A stretch of DNA of 63,852 nt, filler included, from Reticulomyxa filosa (lineage: Eukaryota; Protista; Foraminifera), in the NCBI GenBank assembly GCA_000512085.1. It is 20 parts of 20 records of this genome, joined end to end, with 100 filler letters (N's around TTAATTAATTAA, not from the genome) between each part and the next. Parts side by side here need not be neighbours in the genome. Positions count along the whole stretch, not along the records: positions 23,151 to 34,415 come from ASPP01023808.1; 19 more parts are not named here. One strand, given 5' to 3'. Made by a program: the position numbers and the translations under genes. Below the pieces are notes generated by a model. That model did not search any database. It was not told where the DNA came from and was given only the letters and a program-made list of their open reading frames with translations. Positions 406-34,415 of the stretch are shown here, piece by piece. Positions within the stretch are counted from its first letter, which is position 1, and every line of letters begins with the position of its first letter.

Positions 406-1059
406 TTTCGAACTTTTCCGGCGGCATTCCCAATTACAACATATTGTAAGCTGTCAGGATTGCATTGTCAATTCTTTTTCTTTTGCACATTTAGTGAGAT
501 CGAAATGTGAATCCCATGGATTCAACAGCAGGCTGTGCTTATTGTCATTTGTTAGGATTGTCTATTGCGATATGTTCATCTGGCTGTGTGAATGTATCAT
601 CCAATTCGATTTTTGCTATGTAATACTTTGCACTTTTGGAGCCAAGAGACTGTCGAAGAGGTTGGCAAAAGTGATTTTTCCTGTAGGATCTTATCTCGTG
701 CCAGTTTTGTAGTGAACAAATAAATAACATACTACGTTTAGAGTTATCACTAGGTGGAAGTATTAGTGCTATCTTATCTTTGATATTTGCTAAAGAGTGG
801 AAAGGAAAATATAACTTTTTGTGCTATATATATTCATATCAAGTAAATGCTTGTGTCGGGCAATATAACCACTTTTTGAATTTTCATTTTTACAACAGCA
901 TCACTTATGTTTTCAACAGTACGTCTTCAATAACAGGTTGTGCACTCAAAAATGAGATTAATGTTCATAAGACCTCCAAACACTAGATCACACAAAAAAC
1001 TTAAAAAAGTTGGCCTTACAATTTTCCTTTTTGGAGTGTGCCCGCGAAACAAATAAAGA

Positions 1060-2117
1060 ATGTTGCGCTATTCTAGTGTTGTTCATAAGCATTTTTATCC
1101 GACCGCTTGTTATTCACTTCAAAAAAGCTGGAGCTCAACATATGAAACGTCGGCCAAAATAAGTAAGCACTTTTCTCACTTTGAGAAAAGCCCAGTCTTA
1201 AAAAAGACCTTGACGGCTTTTGAAGACCAAAACAAACGTACATCATAAGCCAAAAAAAAAAAAGAAAAGCCAGCAGTAGAAGTTTTAATGGTAGTGACGA
1301 ATCATACTTCTTTGGGAAACACAGGCAAGAAAACTGGATGGGTAAGTAAATCAACAAAATTGACTCAATATCGATCCCTTAAAAAAAATAAAAAAAAAAT
1401 AGTATCTCCCGGAAGTGAGTCATCCTTACTATCAATTTATAAAAAGAGGTTACAAGATAAAGTTTGTATCTCCAAAAGGGGGATTAGCAGCAGTTGATCC
1501 CGGAAGTGTGAAGTCTTACGCAAAAGATGAAGAATGTGTGAAGTTCTATAAGGACATGTGCGATTCGAACGGAAATTTGAAAACTGTAGCAATTGGTGAA
1601 TTGAACCCTCTTGGCTACCAAGTTGAATGGAGGCATTTTATTTTGTGTTTTAATATTACGAATGGGGCAGCAGTAATGAAGGGGGAAATATATATGTACA
1701 TAGGTGATAGTGCATGCCGGTGGGCACGGCACTATGTGGGATTTTCCAAACGACAAGCACTTGCAGCGTGCCGGAGAGATGATCTATCGTAATGGTGGTA
1801 TTTTGGCAAGTATTTGCCATGGTCCAGCCGGCATATTGAATCTAAAAGACAGTAAGGGCAGGTATTTGATACAAGGGAAGCACGTCACTGGTTTCAGCAA
1901 TGCTGAGGAAGCTGCTGATGATATGACTTCGGTTATGCCGTATTTGCTTGAGGATGAACTAGTCAAACGTGGTGCAAAGTACTCCAAAGCAAATCAACTT
2001 TGGGCATGTCATGTTGTCAGTGATGAGCGTATCATCACTGGCCAAAATCCAAAGAGTGGGCATTTATTCGGTGAATCTATTATCAAAGCAGTAGATACTT
2101 TTCTCGTAAATTGCTGA
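1060..2117 (+). CDS. DJ-1/PfpI family, Hsp31-like glutathione-independent glyoxalase; 4 exons
   Basis: Exons 1060-1237, 1274 (or 1277)-1341, 1403-1621 and 1704-2117 (all GT-AG) splice to VLMVVTNH..KKTGW|YLPEVSHPY..VSPKGG..AGGHGTMWDF..SICHGP..VTGFSNAEE..ITGQNPKS. Nucleophile Cys-His present. N-terminal extension resembles a transit peptide. Confidence 0.88.
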
Positions 2118-2581
2118 TATAATGTGACTGTTGTGTTGATGTGTATTGCTCTTTCTTCAGTTGGTCCTTACACTCTTGAAAAGTTTGGATGGCTATGTTT
2201 CTTTTGATGAAACTGTTGCAAGACTTAATTCGAAAAACGTGTACTTTCTGTTTATTCGTAGCAAAGAGTTAATTACAACAGAAATTTTCACACAATTATT
2301 GTGCTAGAAAGACTCACTATGTTATCTTCCACATGTATGTTGAAGCTTGAAAGTTATATGACCGAGTTTGTTTAATCGATCTTTTTTTTGGCGTAAAGTA
2401 ATAAAAACAGACTTGGATTTCCATTAAAACTATTCATAATCTAAATTTTTAAAACACTATGCTTTTTAAACTACATTGATTTATTGCGTTAAAAAAAATT
2501 ATAAAAAGTGTTTTTCATGTGCTTAATTTTACATAGCAGTATATATATTTATATTTCAAAAATTAAATATATTATACAGTA

Positions 2582-2681
2582 NNNNNNNNNNNNNNNNNNN
2601 NNNNNNNNNNNNNNNNNNNNNNNNNTTAATTAATTAANNNNNNNNNNNNNNNNNNNNNNNNNNNNNNNNNNNNNNNNNNNN
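2582..2681. other. Artificial contig linker N44-TTAATTAATTAA-N44 (first of 19)
   Basis: Identical six-frame-stop spacer also at 3937, 15563, 18864, 23051, 34416, 35761, 37249, 39444, 44519, 48183, 49305, 50414, 52432, 55771, 57861, 59181, 60283 and 62145 (100 nt each). Confidence 0.98.
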
Positions 2682-4425
2682 AGGAGAGACCACAATAGAC
2701 AAACGTGTTTGTTAGGCCGCGATGACAGCACCTTTTTTTTGAATGGTGTCATTTTGGGTGTGTTGGGTTTACACTGATTCTTTTCTTTCTTTTTCGGCAA
2801 CTGTTGCAGTTTTGCAGAGGAGTATATTGAAGAAGGAATCCTTGAGAAATGAGCTCCATGTTGTATACTTTGGCTTGTTTGGTTGTTTAAAGAAGAGCCA
2901 ACACCATATTCGTAATGTCGAAGAGAACTTTTTCTAAAAAGGGAAAACTTTTTCTTTTCTAGAGAAAAATCATTACTCAAGAAAAAGTAAGGATTTATTC
3001 AAAAAAAACCATTTAAATTTCAATTATCTGTAATTAATCAATTTTTAGAACCAAAAATGAAATACTATACAAAATTTTTAACTATTTTTTTCAATTTGGT
3101 TTTTGTCAAAAATGCCAAAATATTCCAAAAAATTGCAAATTTACATTTTTTTAATAGACATTTATGAATTGTGTCTACGTCTTGTTTAAGAAAAAAGGGT
3201 CTTTTTTTTTTCTTTGGTTGTATCTCTCTTTAGTACCAGTTCATAATTAAGGCGCCAATCGTCTTCTTAGCAAACACTGTATGTCTTTTTTCTTTTTTAA
3301 GTTATTTTGCACTTAAAAAGTGATTTTGTTTTGTTTTGTTTGAACAGTCGCAAACTCCAAAAAAAAAAAAAAAAGACGTCATTTTTGTTTGGATGCTGTG
3401 TATCCTTCTGCAAGAGAAAAAAAATAATTGATTATGGGGTAAGGCCCCCCGTCTCCGCGAGGAGTAATAATGGTTTGATCTAAATTTATACGTGTTTTTT
3501 TTTTTGACGTATCGACTTTGTTTGTTCTTTGATCAACAGCCGCAACCCGTCTGTTCAAAAAAAAATAAAATGTATACTTCCAACTCCCAACTCCCATCAA
3601 AGAAAAATTTCGGGGTTGAAGCCACCCCGCATTGCAAAAAAAATGAAACGGTTTGTTTCTTTTATTTATTTTATTTGTGATTTTTTTTATCAAATATTTG
3701 TGTGTTGTCAATAGGCATGCACCCGTCAACAACAAATTTCATTTACCCCCTCCCCGTTACAAAAACAAAAAAAAGAAATAGATGATTGTAATTGGAGCTT
3801 TTAGTTCCACGACAAAAGTATGCTTTTGTTTGTTCTTGTTAAAAATAAAAAAGAATGTCAATTTGTGATTTATGTATAGTGTTCAATGATCAAAAAAAAT
3901 ATTGTAAAGTTTTTATTTTTTTTATTTTTTATTTTTNNNNNNNNNNNNNNNNNNNNNNNNNNNNNNNNNNNNNNNNNNNNTTAATTAATTAANNNNNNNN
4001 NNNNNNNNNNNNNNNNNNNNNNNNNNNNNNNNNNNNTATGTTATGCTCTTTGTCAGCTGAAGTAAAGGAAAAATCAAGTTGTTATTGTTGTAGATATTTA
4101 GTATCAATGGAATAAGACAGATATTTGCTTTTTTAAAAAATTTTTGTAATTAGTTGTCAAATTTAAATCTTTGAGAAAGTTTCATTAAATTAAATAAATA
4201 TATATTAACGTGGATTAATGTTTATTGTCAAGACTGAAAATCCGACGAGCAACAAACAGTTACATTTGTGAAAAGTTTTTAAAAATTAGGGATACTTGCC
4301 TATCAAGTTGTTTTTCTTAGAGGCATTTTGTAACTAAGTCTATTCTTTTTTTTGCAATCTTTGGCACGGTGCGTCAAGGTGCTCACCATCCAAGCTTTCT
4401 TGGATTCGGAACTCTTGTCAAGTGT

Positions 4426-22059: not shown

Positions 22060-23157
22060 GAGTTTGTTGAATTAAATAATTTGGTATTGTGCGGCACTTT
22101 GAATGATTTTGTATTATTTTGTTGGCATGCTTTGTCACAAAGAACAAAATTGCTTTTTTAACCAAACTTTACTTCATTGCAATTTTTCTCTCTCATTATT
22201 GTTATTTTGTTTTTTTAGTTTTTTTGAAGGCAAAAAATCTTTGAGATAATTGCAAGAAATTCATTCCAACAAATCTCGTGTTGCTGTGCAATAGTTGATT
22301 TTTGGAGAAGGGGAGGATGGTAATGGTTTTTCTCAATTGACCTCCACATATTTATGGAGTAAACAATGTTTTCGTTAGCAAAATTGCATTCTCATTTCTT
22401 GTTAGTAATTTAATTTCATAACAATTTTTATATAAAATTATCATTTTGTTTGTTAAATTCAAATTTTGGAGGAGAGTAAAAAAAGGGGACGTTCTCCAAG
22501 TTCTTGACTTTTTCTATGCCCCTTTTGGCTGAACAAAAACATTACCAATAGTGCGAACGGTGGTCAATTTCTATTTTATCACGTTTTTTCTGCGCTCTTC
22601 TTCATCTTAAGTTACTCAAAATTTTTCATGTTTAGGAGGGTGTTGCTGTAAAAAAAAAAAGCAAGAAAATTTACGTTTTTTTTGGTTCGTTCTTCATTAA
22701 TTATTTTTTTTGTCCATAAAAAAAAAAAATAAACATTTACTTTACTTCATTGATTTTTTTGATTGCTACATGGTGTCTCTGTTTCAGTTAGGCAAGGTGT
22801 CTTTTCGTGTAGATTACCCCCCCCCAGATCTTTTTGTTTCTAATATTAGTAAACATCTTGCCACATCATCTTCTAATTGGTTGTTTCAGAAAGTGCAAGA
22901 GGGAAAAAAAAGGTGTTATGCGTTCAACAAAAAAAAAAAAAAAGTAGATCGAAACAAATAAACAACACGACGTGGATTCATCGTTGTGTGTTGGAACCGG
23001 ACGTATCCAAAGTTCAACAAACTCAACAAGAAACCCCAAAAAAAAAAAAANNNNNNNNNNNNNNNNNNNNNNNNNNNNNNNNNNNNNNNNNNNNTTAATT
23101 AATTAANNNNNNNNNNNNNNNNNNNNNNNNNNNNNNNNNNNNNNNNNNNNTTTTTTT

Positions 23158-23196
<39 letters not shown>

Positions 23197-23296
23197 ATAA
23201 TAAAATAAACAAATTAAGTAAGCGTATACACATGTCTATATACAAGTAAATGTATATATGTATATACATTTACATATATGTAAGGTATGTGTATAA

Positions 23297-24111
23297 CCTT
23301 GTCTTTGTTTATTGACAGGAGCGGGCAACAACGTTGATAGACTACCCGAGCGTGAGCTATGGGATCCACTGCGACTACTGTGAGATCGACTTCGGCTTCG
23401 ACTTGGACTCAGCGCGCTATGGCTGTTGCCACTTCGGCTGCGACTCGACGCGCGACGCTTGTTCCTTCGTTTCGATCGACTTCGGTCGGGCGAGCGGCTG
23501 TCTGATGCTCGATGTTTATGTCTGTGTCTTGAACGGCTTCTGTCTGGAGATAGACTCTCACTGTTTCTTTTTTTTTTTAAAAAAATAAACAAAAAAAAAA
23601 AGAAGTGCGCGATTTTCCGCAAAAGTTTTTTTCAAAATTTTTTTTTTTTGAAAAAATAAACAAAAACAAACTTCGAAGGCTTTTCTCGCTTTGACTGGTG
23701 CTTCTCTTTGTCTTTGTCTTTGTCTTTTTCTCTTTGTCTGTCTTTATCCCTGTCTTTGCTCTTGCCTTTGCGACGACTCTCTTTGTCTTTGCTGCTCTTT
23801 GTCGGATCTTCTTTGTCTTTCGATTTTTTTGCCTCTTTTTTGTCTTTGCTTTCGTCCGATATTTTCTCGTGATCTTTGCGCGACTTCTTCTCTTTTTTAC
23901 TCTTTTCCTTATCTTTGTCCTTGTCTTTCTCCTTGTCCTTCTCTTTGTGCTTCGATTTCGATTTCTTCTCCTTGTCTTTCTCTTTGTGTTTGCGCTCTTT
24001 TGACTTACTGTTTTTCGTTGATTTCCCTACATCTGTCGCAATATCCAAGTCCTTTTCTTTTTCAAGCGACATTACTGAGTCGTAGTCTTTGGAGGGGTTT
24101 ATATCATCCAT
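23297..24111 (-). CDS. Lys/Glu/Asp-rich plus RS-domain protein (probable splicing-associated), 5' part
   Basis: Exon with KEKDKEK repeats (~24111-23672) and exon with SPDRSRSR/SRSRSG repeats (~23561-23297). Remainder lost at the contig end. Confidence 0.6.
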
Positions 24112-27100
24112 TTTATTAATTCTGCATGAACGCCCCTTTTTCAACAAAGATTTCTTTTCCAGCATGTGGTTACACGTTCTGAGTGTTCAAGTTTTCCTGA
24201 TATTTATTTTCAAAATTGGTACCCATTGTACAACTGCCACAATAAGACAAATTCAAAGCCGAATTGGGACCGGGTAATGAAAAAATGACTAGATTGAAAG
24301 AACTTGTCTACAGAGCAATAAAGAAACAATACTATAAGCTAATGTAAAAAAATAATGTAACACTCGCAAAACTTTAAAAAAATCAAAATATAAATTTCAA
24401 ATTATTTTTAAAACAACTAACAAAAAAAAAAAGTATAACTGTAAAATTAAGATTTAAAAAGTTCGAATAAACTACATTCGAAAAACAGAAAATAAAAAGA
24501 AAGTTAGCTAGAACTTTTTTTTATGTTGTCTTTAAACAAAGTTTCGTAAGGCAATGTGGGACGTCTGCTGATAGTAGTGGTACACTAACTGTAATACGAG
24601 AGGTGTTTACTAAGAATAGAATAGTGATTTCGTAAAACAAAAGAAATTGAAATAATAAAACAAGATAACAAAAGGAAAATAAAGAAAAGCAAGAAAGTAG
24701 AAGTAAGTTTGTTGAGGAAGTTAACCTACTGGGGATTCCTCCGTTCCCTTGGCGTTCAGATACTCGTAATATGGACTTGCCCTAAAGCAGTAAACTTGGG
24801 TTTTAAAACTCTACTATATAACAAAAATGACAATCATTCAATACTTCAATTATTATTCCAAGATGTTGGCTTCTGACACTAGGGTTAGATCTACTGTATA
24901 TACTGGTTCATATTATCAACGATATCATAAATAAAAGATTAATTTGATGAATAATTTCCAAAATTTATTTGTCATTATTGTCTTGAAGTACTCGCTAAAA
25001 GAAAGGAACTAGTTTATCACATGTTGATATTTACAAGTAATAATAACATAAGAAGAATTTACAGATGTAAAGAATACACAAAAATTTAGATACAAGTGAA
25101 AATTCGCAAGTTGGAAATTCGTATATATTTGCAAAAAGAAATATAATAAGAAAAATGACAATGAAGGAGAGCAATGAAAAAGTACAAGTAATATCTAGTG
25201 TAAATCGTAAAAAAGATTGTGATGTCAATAGTAGTTTAACATTACAAAGCAGACCAAAAATGATTATACTTTTAAAAGAACTTTAAAAATTTTGTCGGTG
25301 AGCACAAAGTTTACTGGAATTCTGTCAAATAAAATAGAATATCAAAGAAAAAATTGAAATTGCATTTGGTGTGAAATTGAATGGAAAAATCCGATTTACC
25401 ATTTACAGTATAATGCAAAGTAAAGTTGACACATAAAACGGCACATTATAGAAATGATTGATTTTCTTCATGAAAAACAACATTCAGACCTAATTTTTTT
25501 TTTTAAATATCTATAAATTGTGTAATTTTTAAATATCATTTTGGTTTTTTATTAAATCTTTCATAATTGTTTAAAAAATTTGAATATTTATTCATTTTTG
25601 AAAATTTTCGAGAAAAAGTTGACGATCGTGCTTACGTCGTAACTATGAAACTTGACAACTTTTTGAAAAGCATTTTCAGAAAGTCCTCAAATGCGTAGAT
25701 ATTTGTAAAAAAAAGATTAGTCTTCTACGTTGCGTAGTTTTTGAGAAAAATTAATTTCTTTGCGTTCTACTGTATAATGATAGTGACAGTAAAGAATATA
25801 ATGTAAATTAAATATATAATCGAGAAATACAGCAATCGATTTAAAATATTAGGCCGCAAGTAGGTAATCAAAACAATGAACAAATTACAATATTATATAA
25901 ACAAAGGTGATCAGAAAAATTTTTACAATTTAGTAAATAAGCTAAAACAAGCAAAACCATTAATCTATGAAGAACAAAGTGGATTCATGGTAATAGAGTC
26001 AACAAAATAATATTATAAAGTCTGTCATGCAGGATTAATGTTTAAATTATATAATACCGATATCAAATGAAATATGTTTAAATTACTATAGTCGCTGATT
26101 ACAATATCAATCTTGTAGTGACAAATGAAAACTATAGATATATGCCATTTCGAATCTAAACTGAAACAATCTAATTTTACTAAGTCAGCGAACCCATATT
26201 TAATTTATACATCAAAAAAATAAATAAACAGTAAATAAATCAAAATTTTATGACTTAAATGCCATCATGCTTATTTTACGCTGACGACATAATATTAATT
26301 GTGTTTGATCAAGTTGAAAATGATAAAATATTATAATCAATACAGCAAATGGAAATTGATAATAAATCCCGGTAATATCTATATATTACACGAATAATTA
26401 CACTTTGAAATACATTAAATATACTTGCAAATACATTGGAATTACATTCAACTTGAAAACACTTAGCTAGAATAATAGCTGTTAAGACAATAACTATACA
26501 GTTGCTCGAATATAGTCATCGACCAATCTTGCTAAACAAAACAGCAAATAGAAAACGGTATAATCTGCAACAACTTTCACGATTAAAAGAATTGTAAATG
26601 CATATGATTACGTATCGCCATACAATACTCAAATCAATGAACAAAGTGTTACTATTATCTAGCTAGTTGAATTAATGATTTGTTAACTACTAGCTGGCAA
26701 AATTGTGCGATATTAACATAAACATTTATCAGCAGTTACAACTAACTTGTAAAGAAAAAATACATGCGGTAATTCGCATTGATATAATTCACATTGTTCG
26801 TTACGTACATAATATTCTGTTTAATTCTTGTTGCTACATTAAATTAATCTTTTTTTATCAATGAATTGCAAACTAATATATATCTAATAACGTTTTATAA
26901 TAATTGCTCTGTGTTTGTTACATTTATTCCTAATAAAAAACGTTGTAAAGTAGTCATGTTCGCTTTACTGATTATATCGTCTACATTTGCAATCCAGTTC
27001 ATTTCGTCAAAGAGCATATCCAAATTAAGCAAAAGAAAAGAAATAATGAATGAACAATGAAAACAAAACGAATTCAAAATATCATATTATTCAAAACACT

Positions 27101-27245
27101 AAATGTTCTTTTTCTGAAGAGCTTCTTGCAATCCTTAAACTTTACCTTGTTCGACGTAACTGCCAAAAATGGACATACATTGAAAAGTACAAACAATGAA
27201 AAACGACAAGTAAAAACTACAATTGGATTGACGAAAAACATAAGA

Positions 27246-29843
27246 CTAAGTTTTGTAATTGCTCTTAGTATTTCTAGATTTGCAATAAGCCAAAGCATAA
27301 TTGGACGAAACAAATTGCCTAAATTGAATCTCCAAGCAGTTTAACGCTTCCATTTGCAGATAGTCAAAACTACTCACACAAATCTGTCTTTTTTTGAACT
27401 TTTCTTCCAGGTCAGCGCGTATGCGTGAGTTCACACCGATGGCATAATTCGAATTTTCACTGATGAATGATCTAAAGAGAGATGAAAACTCTTCTTTGAA
27501 ATTTTTGCGGTATGTTTGAACAGCTTTTACAAAATTGTACAAGGGCACGGTGTGATGAGCTTTGCAGTACAACTTCAAGTATTCTGCTGCAATTGGATGA
27601 TCCAGTGTTGCCTGAAAAGTGGACAGAGACGAAGACAATTACAAAATTAAAAAAAAAAAAAGCACGTACACTTACATTCAATGATGCCAATTCTGGGAAT
27701 CCAAGGTTGGTCAAATCCAATGTCCTCAATCCGTGAGAATTTTCAATTATTGTTAATTGTCTCTGGATCTCTGATTTGCGAAGACGTACCCTTTGCTCTT
27801 CCGTTACGTTGATCCGAATGACCGATTCTCGGGACTTGATGAATGTGGATCCTTTCTTTTGACACGAGAAATTTTGACTGGTATCTTCTTGGCACAAGTT
27901 TGGATTTTTGCCTTTGATGGAATTGCAAGAAGAGGATATGGTCAATGAATATTTTGCAGATTTTGTACGCGAGCTTAAAACCGTCTTAAAAATTTCGCAC
28001 AATGTTTTAATTGTATGTTCAATGACCTGAATTTCTGACCATTCTGACAATATCTTATCTTGATCTTCAAAGTCACCGCCTAGTAGGCAGACCTGTAAAT
28101 TTTTATTTTTTTTTGAGAATATAAAAAAAGATGAAGAAGAAATTACTTTTTTATTTTTTTGTTTCGACTCAACATTTCGAGTAAATTCTTGGATAATTTT
28201 GGTCATACGTTCCAATGGGATTACAATCAATTTTTGCAAGGTAAACGAAATGGTAATGGTCAATCCTACAAATAGACTAATCATCAACGCTAATAAAGCA
28301 ATGTTTATTATGTGTCTCAACCTCACTTCTGAGTAAACCGACACTTGAAGGAGCACATTGTTCGACTTCCAACATTGAATTTCGTTTGACCGAAATTTGT
28401 CCGTAGATTTTTGTGCATAAATGTAACTTTCAGTAATTGTTAACGTGACCACTTCTGTTAATTTTTGTTGTTGTCAAAAGATAATCATGTATTTTTAACA
28501 CATGCCCAAACCTGGGTACTTTGCGATAAAACGCTCGACTAAATCATTCAACGTGGTGTCCATTCCATTTTTGGTGTAATATTCTTGAAAAAACTGAGAG
28601 CAATAATTGAAGATGTCGTAACGTTCATTTTCATAAAATGTTAGCAAGAATAAAATTACGACACTTGCCAAAATGACAAGAGTGATATTTTGGATGATTG
28701 TACCTACTACTTTGGTACCAACTTTTGATGTTTGCTTTTCACAAATGGTGTGCACAAGAGAATTTGCATTAAAAGAATGAAAAAGAAAATGCAGAGATTG
28801 CAAAGATATGCTGTGTCAACTTTTTTTTTTGCGTTAATGTCAACACTTTTTTTTTCGTTTGAATTGTCTTTTTTCCAACCAGGAACAGAACAACTACTTT
28901 CTATTCCCAAAAAGCAAAAAGTACAAAGTTTATGCTCACGGCAATTACAAAGCAACTCTTATCAAAGCCAACCTAACCTGGATCCGGTTGTGGTCTTTGC
29001 AATTCTTCTTTTTGTTCCAAAGTCTTTTTGGAAAATTGTTCTTTTTGATTTTTTGCCAATCGTGCAACCCGCGCAAATCTTAGCAGCCGTGACACTGTCA
29101 ATACGGCATCACCGGCCTGACTAGTAGTCCAATTGGACTATTACAGATGCAGTGCACATTACACCAAAAAAAAGATACTTGATTTGCTTATGATTTCAAA
29201 CACAACTTGTACAAAGACACTTAACCCAATTAAAACCGATATCAAAAAATATCCGGGATGTGATACACAAATCGGTCAATAATGTTAATGTGCCAATCAA
29301 ATCCATCCAAAAAAAGCCACTGCCAATGTATTTGGTGTAAGTGGCACATTCCAGAACAAAATCTGTAGCCAATATTAAAAAGATAGTTGTCAAAATTGCA
29401 TCAATAGCTCCGTCCCACTGTTTTGACAGTGCCGCACGACTGATATCAAATAAAAACAATGACACAAATACGCTTCCATCCAATATAACTTGGTAAACGA
29501 TTGTTGATAACAATTTATCCTATTTTTTGTACAAGTTTAACAGAAGATCTTTTGCATTGGATGAAGAGAATTTTCCCCCGTTTTTTTAACAGGATCACAC
29601 CGTGAGAAGCGGACAGCGACCAGCCCTCACTTGGTTCATGGGGGCGGCCTCTTGATATTGTGAATGGACAGACTTTTTTGTCCAATCAATTGCGATTTGT
29701 GAACTATTTGGATCATCAAAAAAAGAAAGTCGAATCTTCGAGTCAATATTTTTCAAAAAGCTCCATCTGTTGGGAGGGCTACGTTTTATAGCGGGCTCTA
29801 GGGTCTTCAGGTCTTGATTTTTAAATTTTTCTTCACAATTCAT
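27246..29843 (-). CDS. Voltage-sensor/6-TM (alveolate adenylyl-cyclase-type membrane module) fused to a C-terminal RGS domain; 8 exons, 677 aa
   Basis: Exons 29843-29631, 29519-29226, 29137-28978, 28900-28821, 28734-28512, 28454-28174, 28092-27676 and 27611-27246, all GT-AG, total 2034 nt in frame. S1-S3: SLFLFDI..ATDFVLE..YIGSGFFWMDLIGTLTLLTD. S4: RLLRFARVARLAK. S5 after SKVG; S6 then LIVIPLERM. RGS: SLN|ATLDHPIAAEYLKLYC..FISENSNYAIGVN..SFDYLQMEALNCLE..FRQFVSS. Confidence 0.82.
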
Positions 29844-29916
29844 AACAGACGATAATTTTTGTTGAATAAATTAATGGAACAAAAATGAACAAGCATAGTG
29901 AAACGTTTACATTACT

Positions 29917-29924
29917 TGACGTCA
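29917..29924. promoter_or_regulatory. CRE-like palindrome TGACGTCA
   Basis: 74 nt upstream of ATG 29843. The same palindrome lies at 4934-4941, 86 nt upstream of ATG 4848. Confidence 0.35.
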
Positions 29925-31271
29925 TCACACACGATCTTTTTTTGCAAAGCTATTTTTGCTCACGTTTTAAAAATGAATATTTCACTGCAGTTATGACATC
30001 TTATTGCATATCTTTTCTTAATTTGACTTTTTGTTTAGTCACACAAAAAAGCAATTTTTCGTATTGCATTCTGATGTCAGAATTTATTGGACTGTGAGAA
30101 TGATTTGCATCAAAGTGACTATCACGTGATATAGATTTGAAGAATTTTAAAAAATTCTTAAGAACCTTCAACTATTGTGTACCATTTATCTCGCTGAACA
30201 TGTGGTCTTACTGCCAGAGGGAAGTATAACACAAAAATTTACTTTTTCGCAAGTTTCACGAAATGTACAACCTAAAAACTAGTAACACTAAAATCGAAAA
30301 AATTCATTTCATGATTTGTTAGAAATTCTTGGTTATTTCAGTGGAAAATGACTCAAGTTGTAGTGCAATGCCCTACTAATTACAGTAGAAGCTTCATATG
30401 AGCGAGGGAATCCTTTTTTCCTCAACAACGTTCACTGTCTTTCTTCTTTCGCTTTTCTGTTTTCTTATTTCTTGTCGTTGAGCTGTTTATCTTGATTATT
30501 TAATTACTTTTGAAAACACCTTTCAGTAATTACTTTCTTATTACACTCAATCTTCCTACAAAGTCAATAGAAGTATAGCTTCCAGCGAGACACAGTGGTT
30601 TAAAACGAAATTAACCCATTTGTAATCAGACGTCATACACCAAAAAAAAAATTTCAAAAAATTGTCTCTCCAAGTAAAAAAGTGAATATATAAATAACGG
30701 CTTAATGTTTTAATTTAGTATTTACAGTTATCGTAAATTATGATATTTACTATTGGGTCTAATCAGATTGTGTTGCATATTGATTAACTGAAGTCTATTG
30801 AATCAAGGTTACTGTTGCTGAATTTTTATTATTTGATATATTTGTTACATCTTTTAAGACAAAAACAATACAAAATTTCTTTAAACTAAGATAATATATC
30901 ACAATTAAAAAGAAACCAATTTACCAGTGCAAAAAATTATTTGATTTAAGCGATCGTTTGCTTGCTGGTTGCTGCTTTGGTCTGAATGCATTTATTTGAT
31001 AATAGTGTTTCACTTTGATGTTTTTGTACTTGATTGCGATGATGCTGGCACTTCTACTTTGGTAAGTTTAATAATAGATTGTTCTATTAAATAATTTTTC
31101 GCTAGTAACAACATTGTGTATATCTATTTTGACTTTATGTTAGTATTTAAACAAATTTTCAGCAAAAATATCCACTGTTCGAAGTTGGAGTTTCATTCAA
31201 CAGCTTTTCCCCTAAAGCCTAAGTTTGTACAATAACGCTTCTAAGAGCATCAAGCAGCAAAACCGGACAAA

Positions 31272-32691
31272 ATGCTCAACAATATGAAGGTTTCTTCGGA
31301 ATATAAATTGAAAATTTGGTCTTTATTGTGCGTTATTAGTGTTGTAGTGTTGTTCTTTTCCGTTCCAAGTCAGTTGCGTTCAACAAAAGAAACAGTTTGG
31401 TTCAATTATTTTTGAATTTTTATGAATTTCAAACATCAAAAGTAAAAATAACCCAACAAACAGTTAAAGAATTACGCTACGGCCACAAGTTCAAAATATA
31501 ACGAAACGATTGCCAACCATAGTTTGATGTACGTACAAAATACGTGTTATAAACGTAAAAAAAAGTGACATTAAAAAAAAAACATATAAAACAAACTTAG
31601 GCTTGCGTGGTCAACCTATTGTGACAAATCTGCAGTTGAGGATTGGAATTGCCCTTATTGCACAAGTGCCAAAAACTTTGAACTGTATGAATACATTGAA
31701 GGGGGAAAAGCAGAAAGTCTGGTTGCAATTGTCGGATATGACAAAACGTATCATCAAGTTGTTGTATCTTTTCGTGGAAGCGCCAACTTGCCTAATTGGG
31801 TGGTTAAGTACAAAATTTTTTTGTTTGTTTGTTCCTTGCAAAAAAGGATGTTGTGCTGTTGACGACGTATAATCCCGTAAAAAAAAAAAAAAACAACGTA
31901 CGGTTTGGGTGTATGGTCACTCATAAAGACTGACCTTCAAGCCTGGCAAGTTTCGTATCCAGCAGTATCCGATGGCCTTGTTCATGCAGGTTTTTACGAG
32001 GCATGGAAGGATTTGGAAGATTCGGTGACGAGTGCATACAAGACAGTGTTGGCAGACTATCCTCAATCACCTGTTTTGGTGACAGGGCATTCGTTGGGTG
32101 CGGCATTGGCAGCATTGGCTGTTTTGGACTTAAAGAATGTCGGAACTGATGACAGTAGCACCTATCCAAGTGCATTTTACGTGCACACGTTTGGACAGCC
32201 ACGATGGGCAAATGCTGCTGTAGCATCGTATTTCGAAAGTTCGGTTAGCTATCATTGGAGAGTTGTCAATATGCATGATATTGTCCCTCAAGTTAAGTCA
32301 CACTTTGAAAATAAATAAATAAATAAATAAATTTAACAAATACATACAAAAATTACAGGTACCAACCACATTTATGAACTACAAGCATACCACTAAAGAT
32401 ATATGGTATTGGTGCGATCGACCACTTTCTTATTACTTGTGCGACTCTTCTGACGGTGAAGACAAAAAGTGTCAATATCTCGCCGGAACTGTCGGAGATC
32501 ATTTGGTAAGTGTCCTCTCCAACATTTATTTAATTTTTTTTTTTTTTTTGGGAATTTCAATCTGCTCATTGTTTTCCTTTTGTGTTATTTGGCAACAGTT
32601 TTATATGAACACCAAGTTCGTTTGTGGCCAGTTTTCGATGCCAGACAACAAATATCTTCCTCCATCCTGTTTTCCAAATCCCACAAATTAA
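31272..32691 (+). CDS. Secreted class-3 lipase; 6 exons
   Basis: Exons 31272-31394, 31464-31528, 31601-31802, 31929-32291, 32359-32505 and 32599-32691. Hydrophobic N-terminus, TYC..W.C.YC, VSFRGSANLPNWV|TDL, VHAGF, GHSLG, TFGQPR, HDIVP, DHL|FY. Ser-Asp-His triad intact. Confidence 0.92.
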
Positions 32692-33287
32692 TGTGGATTT
32701 TCCCAATGTTTGATTGATCAAAATCTCGGTGTCTTAAAAGTTGTAAAGGTTGTCTTTTAAATACGAAGTTCGCTTTGTAAACTACTTACTTTTCCATTAC
32801 GAAAGAGGTTTTTAAAGTTTTCATTCTTTCCTTTTTTTTTCATCAGTCAATGAAAAATATATGCAAGCGAATCGAACGTTGCAAAATAAAATGGAGTGCA
32901 AGCGACTAGGCTCTCCGAAATCCCTTTTGAACTTTTGGAACAAGTTCGAAGGGAAAAAAAAACAGTGTCTAAGCGGATATTCAGTTATGTAGTTTTTTGT
33001 AGATTTGTAAATTTTGTACTGATACGTTACACCGAATGCAATATTAAGACGAATTAACAAGTTGATATATAAATTAATTTGGAGAACCTTGTTTTGTAGA
33101 AAAATTATCCAATTTCGAAATTTGACAAAATGCACTAGAATTTGGGAAAACTTTGTATTTTGCAATGACGAAACAAATGGCGACTGACAACAACAAGTCA
33201 ACCCAAAACAACATTTCACAACCACAAAATGTTGTTTGTGATTGGCGCAATGACGAAAAACAATTTCGAAATACAGTATCTTTGTGT

Positions 33288-34285
33288 TCACAAATCTTCA
33301 ATGGGTTCAGACATATGGTGATTATTATGTTCATCTTCATCAGGCTCATTAGCATCCTCAAGTCCAAGCATTTGGTCCTCTACATATGCAAAACAACCCG
33401 CAATTGTGTGTAATAAAAAATTGTGCTTACAAAAAAGAGGTTATTATAAACAAATAAGTGAATATATAAATAATACATGTGGTATATATTTAAATGTATG
33501 TACATTACAAAAAAAAAAAAAAAGAAAGACAAACCAAAATTGTCATTTTCATCAGGATAGTTGCCATCAGTATTTTCATTATCCACAGACATTTGCAAAT
33601 TAACATCATTTTCGTCATCAGCTTCCACAGCCAATAACGTGATAATAAACACCAAGTCACTATTCGGAGGTACCAGACCACCGGCGCCGTGAGTTCCATA
33701 CCCTAGCCGCGATGGTACCCACACTTTGGCTTTTTCTCCTTCGCTCATGGTAAGTAAGGCTTCTTCTAATCCCGGGACTTGACTGCTGACGCCCAATTGT
33801 GTGCGATGTTCGTAGTTGGCAATTTTTCGTGGTGTAAACTGCTCCCAGCGACCTTCGAATGTGATTGTTTATTTGTGCTTACTTTTATGTCACTATTTTA
33901 TATACATATATACATATATGTATATATATATATATTGACCAGTATCTCTGTGATGAATATAGCCCAAATATTTATATCGAACAAAAGAATAAGGCAATGG
34001 ATAAGTAGTGCCATTGCCAGGTTTTAATGTTCGAAAATCAATTCGACTGTAGTCGTCATGAGGAAAGGGGTCATCACTATCATCGTTTTCTTCGACATGT
34101 TCGTTGTCCTCATCTTGTTCATCGTGTTCATCATGTTCCTCCTCCTCCTCCTCTTCCTCTTCATTGTCGTCTCGGTTGGATTTCAGTCCCCCTTTGTCGC
34201 GTTTCGTCAGAGCCTTTGTATTTGCGGCGTCATCGGAAGACGGGACGGTAGTAGGTCCCCCAGGCGTGTCGTGATTTCCAACAAC
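33288..34285 (-). CDS. FKBP-type PPIase domain protein with acidic flanks, 5' partial
   Basis: Spliced exons give TLKPGNGTTYP..VRYKYLGYI..LGVSSQVPGLEEALLTMSEGEKAKVWVPSRLGYG..GGLVPPNSDLVFIITLL. Last exon ends TGA at 33290-33288. Confidence 0.85.
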
Positions 34286-34377
34286 TATCCATTTGTATAT
34301 TCGGGATGTGTTTTATGACCCCAAAACTATATGCACGTCCCAAAGTGTTGTGTGTTCCACCAGACGCACTATCAATT

Positions 34378-34415
<38 letters not shown>

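Follow-up and report, generated by a model that had tools for sequence, protein, structure and literature searches.

Does one gene of the foraminiferan Reticulomyxa filosa join a voltage-sensor-like membrane module to a regulator of G-protein signalling (RGS) domain, and if so, could membrane potential reach a G protein through it? The question is raised by a locus at positions 29843-27246 (minus strand) of the window, by which we mean the whole analysed stretch of 63,852 nucleotides (filler included), joined from 20 parts of the R. filosa genome assembly GCA_000512085.1. All positions given here count along this stretch, and the gene, known publicly as RFI_27444, lies in the part at 23151-34415, which is AT-rich eukaryotic DNA. 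At this locus, a sensor module already known to be portable has acquired an output new to it, an RGS domain, in an arrangement that is conserved and apparently undescribed.

As the reading of the whole locus depends on splicing, the gene model comes first. On the minus strand, eight exons between 29843 and 27246 join into 2034 nt, that is, 677 codons and a stop, with no internal stop (0), and the seven introns between them are all of the GT...AG type and 57-111 nt long. Without splicing, every frame of the region holds 34-42 stops, so the open frame of 677 codons is not a product of chance. A sequence-only reading of the locus had already spliced scattered open reading frame (ORF) fragments and one missed exon through seven GT-AG introns into a 677-aa frame with six transmembrane helices and a C-terminal RGS domain; we obtained the same length and the same freedom from stops, and the hydropathy of the joined exons, the S4 segment of exon 3 and the Pfam RGS match of exon 8 agree with the proposed order of parts. 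Our searches were made with single exons or with database proteins, while the joined exons were used in scripts for length, stops and hydropathy. With the exon 6-7 frame as query, phmmer (exhaustive) gave a 100% identical match, the 700-aa ETO09934.1, which is the GenBank ‘hypothetical protein’ RFI_27444 of Reticulomyxa filosa and has the UniProt entry X6M7Q3 (‘RGS domain-containing protein’). The public annotation of RFI_27444 is already that of one gene with a membrane part and an RGS domain, and we regard it as nearly certain that this architecture belongs to one real gene.

Exon 1 (29631..29843, minus strand, as are all the exons) begins with the start codon at 29843 and encodes a 71-aa cytoplasmic N-terminus, ending in phase 0 at the donor GTGAGG; its ATG is preceded by in-frame stops, and its likeness to the N-termini of homologues is weak. 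The exons of the membrane part were compared with a module profile built from non-Reticulomyxa sequences only, and the matches are colinear. Exon 2 (29226..29519), which holds S1-S3 of the voltage-sensor bundle, matches at profile positions 6-95 with 79.8 bits and shows by tblastn 45-48% identity to the database proteins P0006 and P0009. Exon 3 (28978..29137), with S4 and the start of a cytoplasmic linker, matches at 120-153 with 10.0 bits, and this is the S4 part of the profile. Exon 5 (28512..28734), with the SKVG motif, the S5 helix and the beginning of the S5-S6 ectodomain, follows at 243-314 (33.4 bits), and exon 6 (28174..28454), with the remaining ectodomain, S6 and a cytoplasmic extension containing ‘LIVIPLERM’, at 323-413 (61.6 bits). 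Exon 7 (27676..28092) matches at 414-454 (33.6 bits) and comprises the ‘LLGGD’ turn, the ‘E-x-x-VIE-x-TI’ helix, a variable linker and a conserved pre-RGS segment of ~60 aa. Exon 4 (28821..28900), which supplies 26 aa of the variable S4-S5 linker, is the least certain exon: it has no homology match to the module profile and was placed by frame compatibility and GT-AG borders alone. Exon 8 (27246..27611) carries the RGS domain and ends with the stop codon at 27246-27248.

At introns 2, 6 and 7, the splice sites of the sequence-only reading suit the family better than those of GenBank. With the intron 6 donor GTTGAG at 28174|28173, exons 6 and 7 meet at the adjacent profile positions 413|414 and are joined without an insertion, like all homologues; the donor at 28147 (a 686-aa model) was rejected because it inserts 9 residues found in no homologue. 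Removal of intron 7 links the pre-RGS segment to the RGS domain exactly as the homologues have them. ETO09934.1 was likewise set aside as the best model: it reads through intron 6, with 18 additional residues that are absent in all seven of the seven aligned relatives, it has an insertion at intron 7, and it leaves out the last part of S3 together with the first half of S4. Similarity to homologues (tblastn) continues past its exon 2 donor, to 29247. It also uses an intron of ~20 nt after exon 3 and contains the exon 4 stretch in a different, longer version. The present splice model corrects the public gene model of RFI_27444 at these places.

The membrane part has the features of a voltage-sensor domain (VSD). 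Hydropathy of the joined exons marks S1, S2, S3, S5 and S6. S4 corresponds to an amphipathic stretch of exon 3 that has the pattern R-x-x-R-x-x-R-x-x-R-x-x-K, in which four arginines and one lysine stand at every third position. The structural model contains a four-helix transmembrane bundle with the VSD fold, and the S4 segments of the other forams carry ~10 Arg in the same register. The family's invariant aspartates, which lie at the end of S1, in S2 (two) and in the FFWxD and LLxD of S3, are all kept in exon 2, where the comparison is a match to family invariants rather than an exact mapping onto the Shaker charge-transfer centre. The Pfam Ion_trans profile (cut-off 25) covers S1-S4 in the homologues and scores 26.0 in P0006 and 28.0 in P0016, with the others at 17.7-23.4; the single membrane exons of RFI_27444 gave no Pfam match. 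Of the two profile matches that the sequence-only reading had set out to be checked, RGS was recovered in exon 8, and Ion_trans exceeds its cut-off in the homologues P0006 and P0016.

For the loop between S5 and S6, the model shows an alpha/beta ectodomain of ~80 residues with pLDDT >90 over most of its length, a conserved feature that the forams share with the cyclases. Neither a pore helix nor a selectivity filter found a match: the structural matches lie essentially within the sensor bundle and cover ~110-130 aligned residues, mostly model residues 1-142. An S5-P-loop-S6 arrangement with a filter, as in a pore-forming channel, was thus not recognised in the model; the domain was not folded alone, and a divergent pore is possible. 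S6 is modelled as one long helix that runs into the cytoplasm and is followed by a helix-turn-helix with a conserved proline. A HAMP domain at this place was considered and is taken as no more than a resemblance: Pfam HAMP gave no match, the profile reached Tsr 192-237 (the TM2/HAMP region) with an E of 1.7, and the part from S5 to the linker resembles a HAMP histidine kinase cluster weakly (TM 0.29), all without statistical support. Module and RGS are connected by a variable linker of ~65 residues in the R. filosa copy, longer in most homologues. Just before the RGS domain, at 27676-27870 (minus strand) and in all homologues, stand ~60 conserved residues with the consensus I-K-S-R-D-S-V-I ... 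E-E-E-I-Q, a segment for which no Pfam family was found.

By its profile match, exon 8 encodes an RGS domain, probably with the RGS fold. Against Pfam RGS (PF00615), exon 8 scores 26.8 bits and passes the gathering cut-off of 23.9, and the RGS domains of the homologues score 31.6-39.4 bits. When the family profile was compared with solved structures, RGS4 came first (E 4.7e-9), followed by RGS8 and RGS1, all of them R4-type GTPase-activating proteins (GAPs). All of the top 50 Foldseek matches have the RGS fold, being RGS proteins together with the RGS domains of GRK and SNX proteins; a phmmer search of the PDB with exon 8 alone found no RGS.

Is the fusion peculiar to this one gene model? A word-indexed search with the membrane part of ETO09934.1 found only ETO09934.1 itself. 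The transcriptome of Bolivina argentea contains homologues with an identical order of parts, and a Nonionella stella fragment holds the linker and the RGS domain, so the occurrence of the same architecture in related protists, which the sequence-only reading had proposed to look for, is borne out in the former and in part in the latter. Two metagenome scaffolds encode the whole protein in single uninterrupted ORFs, L001 at 494-2914 (806 aa) and L003 at 799-3069 (756 aa), and both ORFs have precomputed matches to Ion_trans (weak) or PF26726 alongside RGS. Since Bolivina, the Nonionella fragment and the uninterrupted environmental ORFs share the architecture, the fusion is not an artefact of the gene model.

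For a maximum-likelihood tree, 39 of the matching module sequences were used, a selection that omits P0038-P0039, P0041-P0045, P0047, P0049, P0051-P0052, P0054-P0060, P0063-P0064 and P0067. In this tree all modules of the RGS family fall on one side of one branch (support 100/99), and a long branch separates the RGS group from the cyclases; the two R. filosa rows are long branches that come from imperfect gene models. The topology is compatible with a single origin of the module-RGS fusion. R. filosa has a second member of the family, RFI_35292 (P0005), a more divergent paralogue whose S4 region lacks the arginine ladder and which shows a partial protein-kinase match after the RGS domain; its sensor could be degenerate, it could be yet another fusion, or its gene model could be wrongly joined.

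The membrane half has relatives among the protist cyclases. The foram family profile detected phosphodiesterase-bearing relatives (E ~1e-20), and from these a further search reached 48 proteins, many of them with Ion_trans, PF26726 and Guanylate_cyc, from Blepharisma, Stentor, an oomycete and others. Against eleven ciliate and oomycete cyclase-family proteins, hhalign gives the foram family a probability of 99.9% and an E of 1.6e-34; the 367 aligned columns begin at S1, take in ‘LV-x-PIE-x-M’ and reach the ‘ET-x-x-IE-x-TI’ helix. In the ESM Atlas, a search by structure returned ciliate clusters named ‘Guanylate cyclase domain-containing protein’ (TM 0.70), apicomplexan clusters named ‘Adenylyl cyclase alpha, putative’ (TM 0.59) and also a perkinsozoan phosphodiesterase cluster, and all of these carry PF26726, for which the Atlas gives the name ‘Helical_RasGEFs’; the name suggests fusions to RasGEFs, but the searches showed no such fusion directly. 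PF26726 is precomputed in the foram homologues, and exons 6 and 7 of RFI_27444 hold its motifs. Module and linker are the same evolutionary unit that, in the adenylyl cyclases of ciliates, apicomplexans and oomycetes, precedes the catalytic domain.

That the membrane half follows the cyclase module motif for motif, and that the cyclase itself is absent with an RGS domain at the C-terminus, had both been claimed from the sequence alone; the first is upheld by the hhalign result, the exon motifs and the structure matches, and the second by the identity of exon 8 and by the lack of any Guanylate_cyc match (class III cyclase, PF00211) in any exon or in P0001. The gene stops at 27246. In the 3 kb downstream on the same strand, the first 2 kb contain no long ORF, and beyond them lie short ORFs only, unscreened, the largest being a low-complexity K/E/D-rich ORF at 23632-24165. 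By its sequence, RFI_27444 is not a member of the adenylyl cyclase alpha (AC-alpha) cyclases, and the two have nothing but the input module in common. Since the module is found fused to a cyclase, to a phosphodiesterase and to an RGS domain, it looks like a portable input unit joined to varied outputs.

The same searches brought up further carriers of the module. P0017, P0018, P0021 and P0024, from JGI and Logan environmental contigs, are triple fusions with an N-terminal phosphodiesterase, the module and a C-terminal cyclase-homology domain, the last of which is not seen by Pfam but matches a Blepharisma cyclase (E 1e-61 for P0017); a single polypeptide may thus be able to form cyclic nucleotides as well as degrade them. 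In the Atlas, stand-alone clusters of 337-380 aa from spirochaetes (Spirochaetota), without a common Pfam family, match with TM 0.58-0.66 by row, and another search of the Atlas, for which the R. filosa protein was the query, gave a bacterial HD-GYP cluster (Fibrobacterota) with a TM of only 0.29. Given such bacterial structural look-alikes, the sensor unit may predate eukaryotes.

To hypothesize, the charges of S4 would move with the membrane potential, and the ectodomain would possibly add an input of its own; the conformational change would travel down the helices of S6 and the linker and alter the reach or the action of the tethered RGS domain on GTP-bound G-alpha at the plasma membrane, and the electrical state of the cell would thereby tune the lifetime of the G-protein signal. 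In its broader form, in which the sensor module (through voltage, possibly together with the ectodomain) modulates the action of the tethered RGS domain on G-alpha, we consider this plausible without leaning towards it. The narrower form, a foram voltage-controlled RGS protein in which S4, via S6 and the PF26726 linker, would switch the GAP activity or the reach of the RGS domain and so set the lifetime of active G-alpha directly, without a G-protein-coupled receptor, we consider unlikely as stated.

Several observations weigh against such a mechanism. The S4 of R. filosa RFI_27444 is shorter than that of the other forams with their ~10 Arg, and the conserved, folded ectodomain could be the real input. 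A variable and probably disordered linker, together with the conserved segment, separates the module from the RGS domain, so that coupling would be looser than in the voltage-sensing phosphatase (VSP). The G-alpha contact positions of RGS4, S85/E87/N88/N128/D163/R167, read T/P/L/G/Q/Q in the R. filosa copy (by transitive alignment, which around position 128 is uncertain by two residues), and since all of them are replaced, its GAP activity is doubtful. Voltage control of the parent cyclase family is itself unproven with recombinant protein (PMC10651576, PMC12414865), so even the parent mechanism is not settled, although cyclic AMP (cAMP) formation in Paramecium is reported to follow hyperpolarisation (PMC10651576, PMC12414865).

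A different explanation is that RFI_27444 is a membrane-anchored, RGS-like scaffold with neither voltage control nor GAP activity in the R. filosa copy. The six-helix module would then only anchor the protein or work separately, and the RGS fold would bind a partner without hydrolysis of GTP, in the manner of the RGS-homology domains of SNX13/14/25, GRK, axin and AKAP10. The replaced contact positions speak for it; however, the nearest solved relatives are the R4-type GAPs named above, and elsewhere in the family E87 is retained, position 88 is N or S and position 128 is S, T, C or P, the Bolivina orthologue keeping both E87 and N88. Furthermore, the arginines of S4 and their acidic partners are conserved throughout the family, a sign of selection acting on the sensor, and the repeated fusion of the module to signalling enzymes fits a regulatory input. 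Taken together, a mere scaffold is possible but not the likely explanation. The input may also be chemical instead of electrical: the S5-S6 ectodomain would bind an extracellular ligand or ion and signal via S6 and the helical linker, with S1-S4 static. The well-modelled, conserved alpha/beta ectodomain, the lack of a matched pore helix or filter, the continuous S6 helix leading into the helix-turn-helix and the weak likeness to HAMP histidine kinases and to Tsr all point in this direction, but the HAMP-like resemblance has no statistical support, a strict, long S4 with Arg at every third position and its countercharges is hard to square with a static scaffold, and the Paramecium reports link cAMP formation to hyperpolarisation. 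We rate a chemical input as improbable.

A more trivial explanation is that a membrane gene and a small RGS neighbour were wrongly joined, or that the locus is a decaying pseudogene. A search for RNA sequencing runs listed none, exon 4 is without a homology match and the GenBank model departs from ours at four places; these points speak for an artefact. Against this stand the repetition of the same order of parts in the uninterrupted ORFs of the two metagenome scaffolds and in the Bolivina transcript, the 677 codons that stay open where each unspliced frame has its 34-42 stops, and the junction across intron 7, which matches the homologues exactly. An artefact is hardly credible.

A search of the accessible literature library for a described VSD-RGS fusion returned nothing relevant. 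Few voltage sensors are known to drive outputs other than a pore, Hv1 being one of them; VSP, SLC9C1 and the protist cyclases are the others named (PMC10651576). Channels, SLC9C1, protist cyclases and VSP are covered in a 2023 review of proteins with voltage sensors, in which the term ‘RGS’ does not occur. The claim that the architecture has not been described hence stands in so far as no paper was found; it does not hold for the databases, which already contain the protein and, for its relatives, the domain matches (Ion_trans, PF26726, RGS). With GenBank and UniProt entries and precomputed domain matches in place, the architecture is undescribed rather than unseen.

If the proposed control is true, the family would add a further class of voltage-sensor-coupled enzymes beside VSP, the AC-alpha cyclases and SLC9C1. 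One sensor module with cyclase, phosphodiesterase and RGS outputs points to a modular protist toolkit that spans second-messenger and G-protein pathways. Through an RGS output, G-protein signalling would be tied to the electrical state of a cell that is giant, streaming and multinucleate.

The surroundings of the gene in the same part of the window hold other coding sequence. An ORF at 31905-32318 (plus strand) strongly matches a class 3 lipase (Pfam Lipase_3, 96.3 bits), the GHSLG serine motif included, and is probably an exon of a neighbouring gene. The ORF at 33380-33796 (minus strand), which resembles at its start an FKBP-type peptidyl-prolyl isomerase in the C-terminal half (FKBP_C, 51.7 bits, profile 40-94), probably represents a neighbouring gene's last exon. 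On the minus strand, two low-complexity ORFs without a Pfam family, one with Arg-Ser repeats at 23236-23622 and one rich in Lys/Glu/Asp/Ser at 23632-24165, might belong to an RS-domain protein.

Where does RFI_27444 stand among known systems? Its closest relatives in the membrane part are the AC-alpha fusions of Paramecium, Tetrahymena and Plasmodium, which belong to the ion-channel/adenylyl-cyclase fusions attributed to Weber et al. 2004 in the citations of that work in PMC10651576 and PMC12414865. The entire module and the helical linker are common to both: S1-S3 with FFFWLD, an Arg-rich S4, SK(V/I)G ahead of S5, the folded ectodomain between S5 and S6, ‘LV-x-PIE-x-M’ following S6 and, last, the ‘ET-x-x-(I/L)E-x-(T/A)I’ helix. 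Unlike them, RFI_27444 has neither the class III cyclase domain nor the ‘LGFGEAG’ stretch that leads into it, and carries instead the variable linker, the conserved segment of ~60 aa and the RGS domain. The phosphodiesterase fusions (environmental P0017, P0018 and P0024, Tetraparma gracilis P0065 and the Perkinsozoa cluster) have the same module of VSD and PF26726, but their output is an N-terminal PDEase_I, and none of them has an RGS domain.

The distance is greater to VSP (Ci-VSP/TPTE), which consists of four helices, a short linker and a PTEN-like phosphatase, whereas RFI_27444 adds two helices and the ectodomain, its helical linker is long and its output is an RGS domain; the two show 16% identity and no detectable sequence relationship past the common fold. 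On the output side, the nearest parallel is the plant AtRGS1 type of 7TM-RGS protein, in which a C-terminal RGS domain is likewise permanently tethered to a multi-pass membrane domain, an arrangement that would suit control of G-alpha at the membrane with no need for the classical step of a receptor acting as guanine nucleotide exchange factor. RFI_27444 differs from it in having six helices of the voltage-sensor (Ion_trans) type rather than a 7TM receptor-like domain, and the origin of the two fusions is independent.

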